Below, piece after piece: positions 2,633 through 55,267 of a DNA stretch of 64,000 nt (position 1 is its first letter; every line of letters begins with the position of its first letter). The stretch lies in assembly GCA_039096225.1 (NCBI GenBank), contig JBBPEB010000013.1:1364001-1428000 (forward strand). The letters are read 5' to 3'. The DNA is from Blastocystis sp. Blastoise. Lineage: Eukaryota > Protista > Bigyra: Opalinata. The position numbers were made by a program, and so were the translations under genes. The notes beneath the pieces are model-generated. The model saw only the letters and a list, made by a program, of their open reading frames with translations, searched no databases and was not told where the DNA came from.

Positions 2633-3496
2633 TTCTTTGGTATTTATTAATGTATATATATATATATTTTGTTTATATATATATTTTATAGATATATGTT
2701 TAATATCTTTTAGATGTCCAGTGTTATGTTTTATGATTTTTTTTATCTATTTATAAACTCTACGAGCACGTAAAGACAATTCTTATTTTGATCTCATTAT
2801 TTTTTTCTGTATATACATAATAATTTCAAAACACTTTTTTTTTCATTAATTCTTTATTATATACAAAAACTAAAGTTAAATTAAGATATATATTGACTAT
2901 TTTTATTATACTAGACTTCTATTTTCTTATTTACGAGTATTCTAAATATAAATGAAAATATTCATACTATTAAAAACGTACGTATCCATATTCTCGATTC
3001 ATAAATGAATTATTATTACTAGATATCCATGAAATCAAGATAACTATATATTTTAAAAAGGTGTTTTCAAATATTACAGAAACAATCCTCTCAAAATACG
3101 TTAATAGCTATATAATCAGTATATAACTTTATATCCTATAACGAATCACAGATATCTTCTAGTTAAAGAGCAAAGCATAATGATAATCATGCTATTTTAC
3201 AAAAACCCGAAAAAAAAAGAAAAATGAAAAATAAAATATCCTATAGCCAATCAAATTGTTTCGAATAAATAATTGTCAAATGACTACGACTTTTTTCTTG
3301 TATGGTGTTGAACATCAACTCAATTTTTTGTTTGTAGCAAAGACTCTTCTTTTTTACAAGCTCGCTTTTTTCTTTGTTTCTTTTTTTTTTCTAGAAAAAA
3401 CAAAATTAATCTTCGATTAATTAAAAGAAACCTTTATTATTATCAACTGCAAATTCTAAATAAACTCGTCGATTTTACACTTTATCAATTTCAAAA

Positions 3497-5111
3497 ATGT
3501 CTTCTAATAACAAATGTTGTAGTGCCTGGCATTGGATTAAGCCTATTATAGCTGGTCAAATTGTTTCCTGGTTAATTACTGGAACAAGTATCTTTAGTGA
3601 AAAAATTTCAGGATATGGAATCAATCTTGCTATGTTTCAAAATGTTTGGATGTATTTCCTTCTCATGTTCTTCTATTTTATCAAAGTCTGTCAATCTGGA
3701 TGGAAACTTAAAGTATATTGTGTTATTTATGGTTATTTTGTATTGTGTTTATTGTGTTTATTCTATTTATTATATTTATATTATTTATTATATTTATTAT
3801 ATTTATTATATTTATTATATTTATTATATTTATTATAGTTATTATCATTATTATATTTATTATATTATTATATTTATAATTATTATAAAATCTGCTTGGT
3901 GGAAATATACTATTATTGCTTTATTGGATGTTGAAGCTAACTTTGTCGTTGTCAAAGCTTATCAATATATATCCTTCTATAAATATTTATATATATATTT
4001 ATGTTTATATTTTTTTAACTATTCTTCTTTTAAAATGTATTCTTTAATTCAGTATATGCATCAATCCTTAGTATTATGTTAATGGATTCTATTACTATTC
4101 CCGTCTGTATGCTCTTTGCTTTCATCTTATTTAAAGCTAAGGTATTTATACATAGATTATTATTATAGTATTTATATTCATACTATATATATATATAGTT
4201 CCGTTGGAATCACTTCGTAGGTGTTATTTTGTGTATAGTTGGTCTTGCTATCTTTATTACTATTGATATTCAAAAGGCTACTGACTCTTCTACTCCTGTT
4301 GTCAATGCTACAGAATATATATTAACTTCTCTCTATCAAAATGCAACTGAAGCACCCACTATTGCTCCTCAAGATGATTCTACTCTTCATATTATTGGAG
4401 ATTGTCTCGCTATGTTAGGAGCAGTCTTATATGCTATTTCAAACCTCTTCCAAGAATATCTAGTCAAATCCTATGATATGTTTGAATTCTTATCTATGAT
4501 GGGTGTAAATGGTACTATAATTGGATGCATTCATTTCCTCTGTACAGAACTCCCTGAAATCATGAGTACTCAATGGACTGTTGATATTATTCTCTGTTTT
4601 GTTGCTTATGCCATCCTCCTTATGTTCATGTATCTCTGTACTGCTTTATATATATATTATATATATATATAATATCATGAACTCAAACTCCTATTTTACT
4701 TCTTCATTCATCATTCTTTACGTTATTACTTATTTCTTATATATCTTCTATATATATATATATAGTATTTCATGAGTATTGCTGATGCTACTTCCTTTAA
4801 CTTGAATTTATTAACTTCTGATGTATATGCTGCGTTCTTATCTTACTTCATCTTTGGTATTATTCCTGGATATGTCTATTATATATCTCTTGTACTCACT
4901 ATTGTTGGTCTTATTCTCTACTATATTCAAGGATATAAATCAGTATTCAAACCCAATGGAGAAGAAGAACCAAAGAAAATTGAAAGTATATATGATTTAT
5001 TATATATTTATATATATTATTTATTAGTCTATTTTTATCACTTTGATTCATCTGTTTTATATTCTATATACTTTTTTTTCTATAGAAAGTGTAAAATCGA
5101 CTCCTGTTTAG
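3497..5111 (+). CDS. SLC35F1/F2-family DMT-superfamily membrane transporter, 6 exons
   Basis: GQIVSWLITGT, LLDVEANFVVVKAYQY, GDCLAMLGAVLYAISNLFQEYLV, ATSFNLNLLTSDVYA are hallmark SLC35F motifs; stop TAG 5109-5111; three of five introns non-canonical (see findings). Confidence 0.9.
3969..4057 (+). other. U12-type (minor spliceosome) intron with AT-AT ends
   Basis: Donor ATATCCTT, branch TTCTTTAAT at 4040-4048; removal restores AYQY|ASILSIMLMDSITIP collinear with the SLC35F consensus. Confidence 0.75.
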
Positions 5112-5321
5112 AATTGAATGTTGATAATAACTTTTTATTGATTTTACTTTTATAGTAATTCTTCATATGGTTTTGTTATATCTGTTTAAATATACTTTTT
5201 TTGTGTATGCAATTATTATTATTTTTAAATTTGTAAAGAAATAGTTAATGAATAAAACAAGGCATAAAATAGTCTATAATTATAAAAACACAAATAAGAT
5301 AGAAACACACATGAAAAATAA

Positions 5322-6444
<1,123 letters not shown>

Positions 6445-49400: not shown

Positions 49401-50013
49401 AAATAGTATTCTAACTACTTATATATATAAATATTCTAATAATATGTTATTATTATTATTACTATATATATAATTGATTCATAGGTATCAAATGATTACG
49501 TTAGGAGGGGATGCAGAACTGGAATTAGTAGACAGTTTAGATCCCTTCTCAGAAGGAATAGTATTCTCTGTTAGACCCCCAAAGAAAAGCTGGAAGAATA
49601 TATCGAATTTAAGTGGAGGAGAAAAAACATTATCGTCTTTAGCACTTATTTTTGCTCTTCATCATTTTAAACCAACTTCTCTATATATATATATATTATT
49701 GTTAATAATATAAATTAAATGTTTTCATTTACCATAATAAATATATATATATTTTTTTATTATCATATATATATTTATTAGATATATTTTGGATGAAATT
49801 GATGCAGCTCTTGATTTCCGAAATGTATCTATTGTAGCACATTATATTAAAGAAAGAACGAAGGATGCACAATTTATTATTATTTCATTAAGAAATAATA
49901 TGTTCGAATTAGCAGATCGACTTGTCGGTATTTATAAAACAAATAACGCAACCAAGTCAGTCACTCTTAATCCTAAGCTCTTAGCTGAAAAAATGAATAT
50001 TCAAAAAGAATAA
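44082..50013 (+). CDS. SMC4: Condensin subunit SMC4, ~18 exons
   Basis: LENFKSYAG, IGPFHKSFTSIVGPNGSGKSNVID, DLDNNRFLILQGEVEQI, hinge GRLGDLG, GGDAELELVDSLDPFSEG, LSGGEKTLSSLAL, DEIDAALDFRNVSIV. Confidence 0.97.
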
Positions 50014-50621
50014 TTTTGCTAATTTATTTATTTATTTGTTGTATTATGTATTTCAACATTATTTTTTATTTTATGTGTTTTTCTATGTCCTATCTATCCT
50101 ATACTATTACACTTTTTTGTTTTTTCTTTTCTTAGAATAGTATGAAATTTGTATTCATTGTTTTGTTACAAATTACGGATTTTCATTGAAAACTTCATAA
50201 CGATTTAATTATAAAAATAATAATAGTTTAGTTACTATGAAAGTAAAACTATATTATATACATATTTTATTGTTATGACTGAAAATGACTTAAAGGAATA
50301 CTATATTTTTCAGTTGTGTTTCATAATTGGCGGTAAAATTTTAAAAAATTGGCAGAAAACTGGAATTGTAAAAAACACAAAAAAACAAAATAAAATTCTT
50401 GTTTTTTATTTTTAAGACATGCTTCTTTTTTAGAAAAAATGGACAAATATTGATGTACAGTGATCATGAAATGGAAAGCTATCATGAAAATGATCAGTTA
50501 TTTTTATGATAAATATACGATCTTATTCATATTTAATCCACTGTACACTTTGAATTTTTCATTATTTGTCAATTATATTTGGTAAATATCAATTGTTCAA
50601 AATAAAAACAAGAACACTAAC

Positions 50622-51758
50622 ATGGGTAGAAAAAGAGCAGATTGTTGGAGTGAATATGGAGAAATTCAAGAAGGAGGTAGTTTCAAAGCTAGACGTGTAA
50701 AGTGTAGTCACTGTGGCCATGAATTGACTGCTCATGCTAATCGAATGAAAGAGCATCTACGTCAGTGTAGTTCTTATCGTGATGTATTTTATACACTATA
50801 TATTTTAATATAAATGGATCATATCATTATAGGCATTAACTAAAGGTCAAGCGAGACAAGTTGACTTATCTACTGTAAGGTATGAAACAAGACTTGGAAA
50901 TGATATTCAACCTGAATATTCACTTCCTCAAATAGATGTATGTCTTTTATCACAAATTTGTTGTTTATTTTTTTTGTAGACTTACCGTACTCATAGTTGT
51001 TTACGTATGGGTATTGTTGGAGGAAGACCAGGATCTTTCATTGGTCCAGTTCACATAACAGCAGGTATTTTTTTTTTAATTGTTGATTTTCGTTGAATAC
51101 AAATAATTCATTTAATAAATATATATGATTATATATTATAGCTCTATTCATTATTATATTGTATAGCTACAATGGATCGAAGGGCTAAATTAGTTTGTGG
51201 TTGTTTTTCAAGTGATATAGTGAAATCAAGACAAGCAGGTACTCAATATGGATTACCTAGAAATAGAGTCTATAAATCGTATATATAGAGATATAATATT
51301 AATAGATACTATTGTATAATAGAATATTATAAGTTTTTATTATATAATAGAGTGTATTCTAATTATATAATAGTATATATTCTAATAAATAGTATTATAA
51401 AATTATATACTATATATATATATAGATTTGATGCTATGATAGATAAGGAATTGCGTCTCCCTGAGGCTGAGAGAATGAACTTCGTTGCTATTACTACACC
51501 AAATGACTTGCATTTTCAACAAGCTATGAGAGCTGTCCAAGTAAATATGAACCTATTATTATATGCATTATTTAACTTATATACTATTAAACTATGTCTA
51601 TATATATATATATATATAGAATGGATTTCATGTGATGTGTGAAAAGCCGTTATGTATAACAGAAGAAGAAGCGTTACAGTTACAGCAGGAAGTTCGTGCG
51701 AAAGGAGTTATTTTTGGAGTTGCTCACGCATATACTGCATATCCAATGGTTCGACAAG

Positions 51759-51789
<31 letters not shown>

Positions 51790-52577
51790 ATTTATACTTA
51801 TATTACTCACTTTTATATCATTTTTATAAAGTATTCTTAATAATACTCCTATAGTATATATATAAATTGACTATTATATATATGTATATATTACAATGAA
51901 ATATATCCTTTAGGCACGTGAGATGGTGATGAATGGTCATTTGGGTCAGATCTTAGCCGTACGAGTGAAGTATCTTCAGAGTAGCGGGATGGGAGAGAGG
52001 GATCGCCGCGTTTGGGCCAATCAGGCGCAACGAGTAGGAAATAGCTATTGCTTTGGAGATATCGGTATACATGCATATAATTTAATGAGATATATAACGG
52101 GACTACACCCCCTTCGACTCTCCGCTTGTCTTAATCGAATATTTGGAAATAGAACACTAGATGACTATGGTATATATATTATATTATATACTATACTATA
52201 CTATTATATTATATTATATTATATTATATTATATTATATTATATTATATTATATTATATTATATTCTTTTGATTCTTTTTAAAGTTATTTTTACCAAATT
52301 TCTATATGTTGTTATTTCTTATTATATTCACTATATATTATATATATGTATATATATATAGGTACATGTACAATTCAATTGAAAGGTGGTGGTATGTGTT
52401 CTATAACTGCTTCCAAGATCTCTCAAGGTAGAATGAATGATTTATCTATAGAGATTGATGGATCCATGGGATCGCTCGAATGGCATCAAGAGAATCCTAG
52501 TGTATACTTCTATATACATATATATATATATATTATACTATAGGAATTAGTTCATCGACATGTAGGTCTACCTAAAC

Positions 52578-52611
<34 letters not shown>

Positions 52612-53375
52612 TATTCTCTGTATTATTATTCATATACATAATATATACATAATATATATATATATAGATTTTTAGTAGTAATAGTGGAGGGTTTTGTGAC
52701 GCAGACTACGTCAGAAGAGCAGCAAGATTGCCACAAGGACATCCTGAAGTATATATATATATATATATATTATTATTATTATTATTAGTTTTTATTCACC
52801 TTGTTTTTATTCTATTTTATTCTATTTATTTAGGGTTTTATTGAAGCATTTGCAAATTTATATAATTCTTTTTTTAATGATATTGAAGCACATGATCATG
52901 GTCACGTGGTAGATCTATCAAATTCTAAATATATATCCTTTTTATTGATACTTTTTTATATACATACTATCATTTTATATCTTAGAATTATGTGTTCTAT
53001 ATTATAATTTATATATAATCAATAGATATTCTATATTATAATCAATATATAATCAATAGATATTCTATACTATAATGTATACATAAAATAGATTCGCTGC
53101 TATTTTTCTTTAATTCTCTTTACCCTACTATATATGATGGTGTAGATGGTATGTCCTTTTTATATCGTTGTTTAGAGAGCAGTCAACGAGATGGTTGTTG
53201 GATAGACTTCACATCAACACTGGAAGCACAACCTCTCTTTGATACTACGTCTGTTCCCGCTATTCCCTCCTATGAACCGCTATCCGTACATTCTGTACCC
53301 GTACCCGTACCTGTATCTACAGATGACGCCGTGAGTGTCAATGGTAATAATAAACATACAATCGTCCCCAACTAA
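50622..53375 (+). CDS. BED zinc finger fused to a Gfo/Idh/MocA-family NAD(P)-dependent oxidoreductase, 12 exons
   Basis: Exon 1 CWSEY..VKCSHC..ANRMKEHLRQC (BED) splices in frame through introns 50784-50832 and 50938-50979 to LRMGIVGGRPGSFIGPVH..TTPNDLH..HVMCEKPL..GDIGIHAY..RLPQGHPEGFIEAFANLY..YPTIYDGVDGM. Confidence 0.88.
52933..53123 (+). other. U12-type AT-AC intron in the Gfo/Idh/MocA domain
   Basis: ATATCCTT donor, TTCTTTAAT branch, CTTTAC acceptor; restores Y|PTIYDGVDGM. Confidence 0.9.
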
Positions 53376-53882
53376 ACAATAATTAAATAATCAATTTTTC
53401 TCCTTTTTATTTAGTACTTTATACATAAAAAGTATATATATATATATTTATTAAAATATATTTCTTATGTATATAAAAACTGTTCTTTCTTTTGTAGTTT
53501 ATTATTATATCTTTTATTAATATAATAGATTTTCTATTTTTCATTTTTCAATATTTTTCTATGTTTTTATTTGTCATATATATTTATTGTTGTCTCTCTT
53601 TCATAATTATTGCTGGCAATTTTTTAAGTTTTAATTTTTTTTTAATATTTTATATAAGAATATTTATATTCATAATTTTGATTACATTTTTGATTATTTG
53701 TTTTTACTAGCTTTTCCTTTTTCTAATGATATTATTTTATTACTTGTGTTTTGTTAAGTATATAATATTTCTAACTACAAAACACAATCGAGAATATCAT
53801 ACATAATAGACAAACAATAAACAGAATAGAAAAACAGAAAAGTTATACATACTAATCGAATATGTATATAAATATAAACAAA

Positions 53883-54661
53883 TTAATTTTCACGAGGTTT
53901 CTTATGAATAAATTCTGTACCTTGGACGCCCGTTGAACCAAAACCACCAGCACCTCTATACATGTAATATATATTATAATATATATTATGAATATATATA
54001 TATGAATATTAATATATATATATATGAATATTAATATATATATATATATATAATGAATACTTAAAATATATATAAATATATATAATAAATTTTAAATATT
54101 AAATATATATATAATGAATATTAAAAAATATATATAATGAATAATGTACCTAGATGTTTCAGGTAATTCATCCACTTCAGAAATGTCAGCCATACATATT
54201 CTTTCAATAATTAATTGAGCAATACGATCGCCTTTCTTAACTATATATAATAGAAGATATATAAGTAATATATAGAAATAATAAACAAATATATATATAC
54301 TTTCAAGATCTTCATCGTTATGATTAAAAAGAACGACACCTACAGGACCTCTATATATAGAGTTTTATTATATAAATTATTCAAATATATGCGTATATAT
54401 ATATATATACCTATAATCAGCATCAATAACACCAGCGCCAACATCAATAAATTTTTTCCAAGCAAGTCCAGATCTAGGAGCTATTCTTCCATAAGTATTA
54501 GGAGGACACATGATGGATAAATCAGTAGCAACAATTCCTTTGCCATGAGCTTTGATGATACATTCCTTAGCAGCAAATAAATCGTATCCAGCAGCAAGAG
54601 GTGATCCTCTCACAGGGGTTTGAGCATCTTCACTAAGTTTCTTAATATATAAAGTTTCCAT
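53883..54661 (-). CDS. DUT: Trimeric dUTP pyrophosphatase, 4 exons
   Basis: [45 protein letters not shown] (motifs 1-5). Confidence 0.97.
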
Positions 54662-54754
54662 AGATCTTAAGAATAGAAATGTTTTTTGAAATGTTGAGAT
54701 AATATGATTATTAGATAACATTTTCTTTTCAAATTATATAAAATTGTGTGCTTC

Positions 54755-54765
54755 TTGGCGCCAAA
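54755..54765 (-). promoter_or_regulatory. E2F-like site TTTGGCGCCAA upstream of dUTPase
   Basis: Matches TTTSSCGC consensus ~100 nt upstream of the ATG of an S-phase gene, in otherwise AT-rich DNA. Confidence 0.5.
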
Positions 54766-55267
54766 TGACAAATTTAACCGCCTTTTTTCATTTCCAAAGT
54801 TTTAACCATCAATTATCTATTTATCTTATGTATCATGAAAAACTATAACGTGATATTGGACTATGAGTTAAGGTGCTATAAAGATAAGTATTTTTTGCGA
54901 TATCGTTGTTGGTAATCAGACTTTTGTTTCAATGGAGTCAATCATAATAATTATATACCAACGTTATATTTAATAAAACGATTCTGTGTATTCATAAATT
55001 CAAGTTGTAAACAAAAAACATTGAAAAATAGTCATGTTTTAACACATTTGTATTTGATGAACTTGGTCTGTTAAATGAATGTGTTCGTCATTAAAACAAT
55101 GGTCATATGTATAATTGCGAGTTGCTATATTAAATATGAAATGAATAATTCCTATATTTTGTGAAACAAATTTTTTATATTTATTTCTGTTGTTTTCTTT
55201 AAGATTTCTTTTCTATTTAAAACAAACAATTAAAAAATCAATGTTGTTCATGTAAATATCATTTTTT

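Follow-up and report, generated by a model that had tools for sequence, protein, structure and literature searches.

Yeast Gal80, a protein of the Gfo/Idh/MocA oxidoreductase fold, is a non-catalytic, NAD(P)-binding regulator of transcription; it has no DNA-binding domain of its own and acts by masking Gal4. PutA, BirA and NadR are bacterial fusions of an enzyme with a repressor, and Rex, CtBP and NmrA are regulators which sense NAD(H). No eukaryote is more common in the human gut than Blastocystis, and to our knowledge almost nothing is known of nutrient or redox sensing in this organism. We describe here a gene of Blastocystis sp. Blastoise, located at positions 50622-53375 (+) of a 64,000-nucleotide stretch of contig JBBPEB010000013.1 (hereafter the window), which encodes a BED-like C2HC zinc finger followed by a complete Gfo/Idh/MocA oxidoreductase. 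The protein is already in NCBI as 'hypothetical protein WA158_004065 [Blastocystis sp. Blastoise]' (P0034, 526 amino acids, on a 2.16-Mb contig), and its related known kinds are the enzyme-derived regulators, the BED fusions and the laterally acquired genes of Blastocystis. What is new, on the sequence comparisons presented here, is a finger that is more conserved than the enzyme and a clade, termed B-type below, from which the catalytic Lys and His have been lost; the window's copy belongs to the other clade, termed A-type.

The oxidoreductase part resembles most a bacterial subfamily of ~398 amino acids (e.g., in Bremerella and Tuwongella), of which the solved relatives 3v5n, 7d5m, 7d5n and 3dty were deposited only as 'oxidoreductase'. 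These proteins are colinear with residues ~93-475 of the window protein at 44-49% identity and have the same Gly-loop, [DE]KP, D-x3-H and GHPE-F-EAFAN motifs but, unlike the Blastocystis proteins, they have no finger, linker, acidic tail or introns. No specific sequence kinship links the Blastocystis proteins, nearest to the bacterial enzymes, with Gal80. The likeness to PutA, BirA and NadR, or to Rex, CtBP and NmrA, is an analogy of function only: folds and DNA-binding domains are unrelated, and none of these combines a BED finger with a Gfo/Idh/MocA domain. Human GFOD1 and GFOD2 are non-enzymatic Gfo/Idh/MocA homodimers which act through partner binding, and GFOD1 is without cofactor binding (PMC11612644). 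Unlike the Blastocystis proteins they have no zinc finger; the B-type proteins are without Lys and His instead and keep the Gly-loop. The finger has the signature and, in its model, the beta-beta-(beta)-alpha topology of ZBED1/DREF, ZBED2, ZBED3 and hAT transposases such as Hermes (PMC7471704, PMC10368747), but in Blastocystis its fusion partner is a metabolic enzyme fold, with neither a hAT nor an RNase-H-like domain attached, and a single copy is detectable in the window's genome.

Finger and oxidoreductase in one reading frame

The fusion suggested by the original prediction proved to be real in a close relative, where it was read from complementary DNA (cDNA). Two cDNA contigs, L003 (Logan, 1,670 nt, encoding P0001) and L004 (ENA, 1,752 nt, encoding the near-twin P0023), are single uninterrupted reading frames, both with an in-frame stop 8 codons 5' of the ATG. 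They are 99% identical to the genomic contig L005, without its ten short introns (31-51 nt), and the spliced frame runs from the finger into the enzyme. The encoded 526-residue fusion is 73% identical to the window's protein; in this relative a single mRNA carries finger and enzyme in a single reading frame. Three partially spliced variants on other contigs (P0024-P0026) likewise open with the finger or run on into the enzyme. L005 itself is a metagenome contig with a guanine-plus-cytosine (GC) content of 0.43 and with SMC4 upstream (2943-5546), as in the window. There SMC4, placed at 49789-50013, ends at 50013, so that no other coding exon comes between SMC4 and the finger exon. The two short phase-0 GT-AG introns proposed to join the finger exon to the enzyme are both present, although they are not the only ones, the whole gene having 11.

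Were the gene model an artefact, the finger exon would belong to a small gene of its own or form an upstream open reading frame, and the oxidoreductase would start at the LRMG Met in exon 3. Exon 3 opens with an LRMG-Gly-loop stretch which is found near the N-terminus of the bacterial homologues, and these start about 11 residues before the LRMG Met. A B-type cDNA contig, L021, also fits with this explanation in that it ends exactly at the exon 1/2 boundary, and the splicing evidence comes from the relative's cDNA. However, L021, which starts at the first base of exon 2 and continues in frame across the exon 2/3 junction into the enzyme, has a reading frame that is open upstream. Moreover, two independent full-length cDNA contigs and three partial products from other contigs join exons 1-2-3 in frame in the A-type relative, seven lineages have kept both the linker exon and the phase-0 structure, and the NCBI annotation predicts the fusion independently. 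We consider such an artefact very improbable. In run X1, 40% of the sampled words of 50400-53600 are contained, against an exonic share of 49%, which is compatible with spliced RNA and no proof of it.

The finger of exon 1 has the residues first read from it, i.e. the basic MGRKR start, W9, C28-x2-C31 and H45-x3-C49. In an alignment of 18 sequences C28, C31 and H45 are invariant and C49 is nearly so; all four are invariant in 7 Blastocystis lineages, and every lineage has the aromatic residues W9 and Y/F12 on the N-terminal side of the first Cys. Database searches were made with single exons or database proteins (P0034, P0001 and others) as queries. With exon 1, phmmer found 22 proteins among 1.84 billion representative proteins, the top one being P0001 (526 amino acids, 81% identity across the finger), with orthologues matched at E 1e-18 to 1e-25; the neighbours P0007, P0009 and P0010 have zf-BED over Pfam's cut-off. 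When the finger was modelled alone from the 18-sequence alignment (predicted local distance difference test score, pLDDT, 78), it was predicted to form two to three strands and then a helix, and its top TM-scores were obtained with ZBED2 (2djr, 0.58), ZBED3 (9l4j_E, 0.55) and ZBED1 (2ct5, 0.48), all at Foldseek E>0.1. A protein-atlas feature search with residues 1-130 gave mostly BED families as the nearest named clusters (scores 0.78-0.80, a lead only). The finger is basic, with an isoelectric point (pI) of 9.1 and a net charge of about +4.

Conservation of the finger in two clades and loss of catalytic residues in one

In the enzyme body, the Rossmann domain and the Gly-rich loop G100-S108 are present (PF01408, 62 bits on P0001), the C-terminal domain is recognised by PF02894 and PF22725 (78 and 61 bits on P0001), and the structure 3v5n is matched at E 7.6e-74. 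The Gfo/Idh/MocA EKP consensus, GxxVxCEKP, holds the catalytic Lys (PMC11612644); the window's motif, GFHVMCEKP with K202, is intact, and D288 and H292, the acid/base pair of the D-x3-H motif (GDIGIH), are kept with it. Both motifs had been noted as intact from the start, and the loop flagged then as divergent turns out to be a deletion of 5 residues relative to the bacterial homologues, common to the Blastocystis proteins. All NCBIfam equivalogs scored far below their cut-offs, with a remote resemblance to levoglucosan, inositol and xylose dehydrogenases from which no substrate is assignable, and the bacterial gene neighbourhoods that were looked at gave no hint of a substrate.

Two types of sequence are found within Blastocystis. 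The A-type (window, L005/P0001) reads CEKP, GDIGIH and TPN, and the B-type (L009, P0154-P0158, P0160/P0181) reads CE[S/T]P, SDLGxQ and SPT or TPT, the last in the three lineages read there. The catalytic Lys is replaced by Ser or Thr and the His by Gln in all seven B-type sequence lineages. The Glu of EKP is kept in the same 7/7 lineages, the Gly-rich loop in 5/5 loci read there, and the Asp of beta2 in both lineages where that exon was read. The B-type branch, of 2.47 substitutions per site, lies within a monophyletic Blastocystis clade. The Gal80-like pattern proposed for the locus thus applies to the B-type clade, which shows the same kind of catalytic loss, but not to the window's own copy, which keeps K202, D288 and H292.

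Identity between the A- and B-types is 63-70% for the finger exon but only 39-45% for the catalytic half; within the B-type the values are 74-96% for the finger and 60-79% for the catalytic half. Across seven lineages, 28 of the 54 finger residues are invariant, eight of them consecutive in the helix of the His ligand. For exon 1 the nonsynonymous rate (dN) is 0.03-0.30 with saturated synonymous sites, and the ratio to the synonymous rate (dN/dS) is 0.11-0.20 where computable. These comparisons indicate that constraint is stronger on the finger than on the enzyme. Since the finger is the better conserved part and the catalytic Lys and His have been lost in the B-type, the finger and not catalysis appears to be the constant of the family, and a conserved non-catalytic role is likely. 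A conserved finger together with the loss of catalysis in one large clade would mark a function other than metabolism.

Another possibility is an enzyme brought to chromatin or nucleic acid: the finger would deliver an active oxidoreductase to DNA or RNA, where it would act on a sugar-containing substrate or cause a local change of NAD(P)H, without any sensing. The A-type proteins have what this would require, that is, the catalytic residues and a basic finger on a flexible tether. The B-type proteins, however, keep the finger without the catalytic Lys and His, which means that catalysis at the target cannot be what has been conserved, and we know of no such DNA- or RNA-linked substrate in Blastocystis, which counts against it as well. 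This explanation seems to us improbable.

In all the longer loci examined by tblastn (L005, L009, L013, L014, L015 and L016), the enzyme exon is preceded at a distance of 0.5-0.9 kb by the finger, linker and Rossmann exons in this order; these six further loci have a GC content of 0.37-0.51 and introns of ~30 nt. Products of exon 1 (P0027, P0030) occur on many metagenome contigs, and the long enzyme exon of L009 as query gave seven further lineage variants (P0153-P0160). Exon 7 searched against genome contigs gave no confirmed relative, and the gene is single-copy in the window's genome. Apart from the Blastocystis sequences, a Gfo/Idh/MocA domain is absent from all other finger matches that were scanned with Pfam. 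The combination of a BED finger with a Gfo/Idh/MocA domain was found nowhere outside Blastocystis among the 1.84 billion representatives, and no description of it was met in the literature searched, in agreement with the initial view that this architecture had not been described. The gene family thus appears to be confined to Blastocystis, as far as databases show, and the distribution of its exons indicates that the fusion arose before at least seven Blastocystis lineages diverged.

As had been proposed, the enzyme is of bacterial type. Its nearest homologues outside Blastocystis are the ~398-residue proteins without a finger described above; those with a named source are bacterial and belong to the Planctomycetota, and one of them lies on a 6.5-Mb Bremerella chromosome among bacterial genes. 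A quick IQ-TREE analysis together with 50 bacterial sequences placed the 9 Blastocystis proteins in one clade, with a support of 99 (Shimodaira-Hasegawa-like approximate likelihood-ratio test, SH-aLRT); this tree is midpoint-rooted only and the donor is not resolvable from it. From this distribution we infer that the enzyme was acquired from bacteria, and, as intron positions are common to the lineages, the acquisition must predate the Blastocystis radiation.

The finger had been described as a DNA-binding domain of transposon type. No finger-related sequence was detected elsewhere in the window's genome, no related finger or hAT domain was found nearby, and no hAT or RNase-H-like domain is attached to the finger, which is followed only by the Gfo/Idh/MocA domains in Pfam. 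A capture from a transposon is accordingly unsupported, and the sources of the distant finger relatives are too scattered to point to the finger's origin.

Possible functions of the fused protein

In a full-length model of P0001 the finger is folded, the linker (67-93) is disordered, the enzyme body has a pLDDT >90 and the tail (477-526) is disordered. The original prediction had proposed that oligomerisation could present paired fingers. In a structure prediction with two copies of the enzyme body the score was 0.32, against 0.00 for the best of 3 controls, so that the model supports binding, and the predicted dimer interface is the C-terminal beta-sheet usual in the family. Contacts agree between the runs to at least 94%, and the partner has a pLDDT of at least 88. 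Of 30 proteins solved as pairs of one chain, 21 reach the mark applied to this score, and of 23 solved as single chains none does; the pass may nevertheless reflect the model's memory of the many solved dimers of the family.

We propose tentatively, as a possibility falling somewhat short of probable, that the protein is a DNA-binding regulator which senses a cofactor or ligand and acts as a dimer with tethered fingers. The Gfo/Idh/MocA body would dimerise through its C-terminal beta-sheet, and the dimer would bind NAD(P)(H) and possibly a sugar-like ligand too. Two flexibly tethered basic fingers would attach it to a sequence-specific partner, most likely DNA, which is the usual target of BED fingers with such a signature (PMC7471704, PMC10368747). 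The state of the cofactor or ligand would thereby be coupled to gene regulation. With Lys and His intact, the A-type proteins could be both enzyme and regulator, like PutA; the B-type proteins, having lost Lys and His and kept the Gly-loop, could act as sensor or scaffold only, like Gal80. A Gal80-like role in cofactor sensing, tethered by the finger, is plausible. The fullest form of the proposal, in which a laterally acquired bacterial sugar oxidoreductase and a BED finger would have become a cofactor- or metabolite-sensing, DNA-binding regulator in one polypeptide, bifunctional in the A-type of the tortoise and related lineages and a pure sensor in the widespread B-type, i.e. a eukaryotic counterpart of PutA or Rex and a Gal80-like switch with its own DNA-binding domain, is doubtful as a whole. 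If the finger does bind DNA, the family would be a rare case in which eukaryotic gene control has taken up an enzyme gained by lateral transfer, and would offer a natural series from enzyme to pseudoenzyme-regulator.

Several observations weigh against the regulator reading: (i) BED fingers are also able to mediate protein contacts, ZBED3 being part of the subcortical maternal complex (SCMC); (ii) zf-BED (PF02892) gives 18.5 bits on exon 1, under the Pfam gathering cut-off of 20.6, and no match at E<0.01 on full-length P0001, so that of the BED-type identity originally assigned the zinc-ligand and aromatic signature holds and a Pfam score above the cut-off does not; (iii) the Foldseek E-values of the modelled finger, a small domain, are non-significant; (iv) the window's copy has kept every catalytic and cofactor motif and may be an ordinary enzyme with an accessory finger; (v) the A- and B-types occur at different loci and may be paralogues with different jobs; and (vi) in the window's own strain the fusion is indicated only by the conserved structure and the independent NCBI prediction. 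As to the fifth point, a Nucleotid_trans gene lies downstream at 4 of 5 B-type loci (the four with readable 3' flanks), with a TPT gene also at two of them, and the upstream genes vary; SMC4 upstream of the A-type as against Nucleotid_trans downstream of the B-type suggests that the two are perhaps paralogues.

Alternatively, the protein could be a metabolic sugar or cyclitol dehydrogenase whose finger is an accessory zinc module for protein contact, stability or localisation rather than for DNA binding, the dead enzyme of the B-type being a scaffold for the same partner, without any gene regulation. The intact catalytic and cofactor motifs of the window, the faint NCBIfam likeness to levoglucosan and inositol dehydrogenases and the sub-threshold zf-BED score are in line with this, as is the fact that ZBED3, among the top structural matches, works by protein contacts. 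GFOD1, moreover, is a Gfo/Idh/MocA pseudoenzyme which acts by protein binding (PMC11612644). On the other hand, the finger is strongly basic, with an N-terminal basic arm and the aromatic signature typical of DNA-binding BED fingers, and an accessory module more conserved than the enzyme across clades is hard to explain. We regard this dehydrogenase with an accessory finger as rather unlikely.

The C-terminal tail is acidic (pI 4.4). A motif around VPAIPSYE (window 53230-53372; P0001 477-526) is kept between the A-type proteins and can be recognised in part in L009; a docking function is possible.

Gene structure, the last intron and neighbouring features

The window is AT-rich (GC 0.25) with many short TA-rich introns, and its low GC and long introns are consistent with tortoise Blastocystis isolates (PMC12129017). 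A model of 12 exons and 11 introns, built from coordinates, gives a product of 526 amino acids (Table 1), with which P0034 is identical apart from residues 433-442.

Table 1. Exons and selected introns of the fused gene, in window coordinates
Feature	Position	Strand	Description
Exon 1	50622-50783	+	BED-like C2HC zinc finger, residues 1-54; MGRKR basic start, W9, Y12, C28-x2-C31, H45-x3-C49
Intron 1	50784-50832	+	49 nt, GT-AG, phase 0; spliced at this position in the relative's cDNA
Exon 2	50833-50937	+	Linker of 35 residues (55-89); initial ~20 residues kept in all lineages, remainder predicted disordered
Intron 2	50938-50979	+	42 nt, GT-AG, phase 0; supported by the relative's cDNA
Exon 3	50980-51064	+	Start of the oxidoreductase (LRMG...) and Rossmann Gly-rich loop G100-S108 (51010-51036)
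Exon 4	51167-51278	+	Rossmann beta2, conserved SSD motif
Exon 5	51426-51540	+	Rossmann domain, TPN..H motif; PF01408 weak on exon 5 alone
Exon 6	51620-51757	+	CEKP motif, K202 at 51644-51646; PF01408 29.5 bits
Exon 7	51914-52169	+	C-terminal domain, shortened loop, GDIGIH (52058-52072; D288 52058-52060, H292 52070-52072); PF22725 45.6 bits
Exon 8	52362-52501	+	C-terminal domain beta-sheet, the predicted dimer interface
Exon 9	52544-52579	+	12 codons
Exon 10	52668-52748	+	Ends in GHPE
Exon 11	52834-52932	+	GFIEAFAN...; homology to cDNA-supported P0001; the NCBI model stops the exon early, at 52900
Intron 11	52933-53123	+	U12-type AT-AC, by homology; orthologous intron absent from cDNAs L003 and L004
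Exon 12	53124-53375	+	Last helix of the enzyme, acidic disordered tail of ~50 residues and TAA stop

Intron 11 begins with ATATCCTTT at 52933 and ends with AC at 53122-53123, and a branch-site-like element, TTCTTTAAT, is located 10-18 nt upstream of this 3' AC. The tenth intron of L005 (7650-7700), ATATCCTCT...TAC, is spliced out in both cDNAs. AT-AC splicing in the window gives the junction ...SNSKY|PTIYDG, which aligns with ...MNAKY|PTITDG of the relative and with ...YPN..DG of the bacterial proteins. The GT-AG intron of the NCBI model (52901-53091, with exon ends at 52900 and 53092) was rejected, as it has a weak GT donor and introduces ten unrelated residues (433-442) in place of conserved ones, which the AT-AC intron brings back. 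The AT-AC intron was preferred because it is the sole reading that matches the cDNA-supported relative. Homology to cDNA thus indicates that intron 11 is a U12-type AT-AC intron and that the public gene model of WA158_004065 is mis-spliced there and should be corrected.

U12 introns were already known in Blastocystis (PMC5608401). Since this one lies inside a gene of bacterial origin, it would have been gained after the transfer. In the B-type lineage L016 a GT-AG intron (3737-3764) occupies the position of the window's AT-AC intron, from which it follows that the intron type would have switched between the clades. The 88-nt intron between exons 9 and 10 (52580-52667) is not present in L005, and L009 has zero introns between exons 5 and 10. 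Comparison of these loci indicates that intron gain or loss in the fusion gene is ongoing, and the gene offers a clean example of intron gain, a U12 intron included, in a gene of bacterial origin.

A second reading frame of 193 amino acids is found on L021 (1386-1964), 50 nt past the fusion gene's stop; if the contig is chimeric or a read-through product, this frame could belong to a neighbouring gene. In intron 7 of the window's gene (52170-52361) there is a long tandem array of a 10-nt TATTATATTA-like repeat. Downstream, about 500 bp from the stop codon, a convergent gene on the minus strand (~53880-54800) is a candidate dUTPase by its C-terminus, which has a GGFGSTG-like end.

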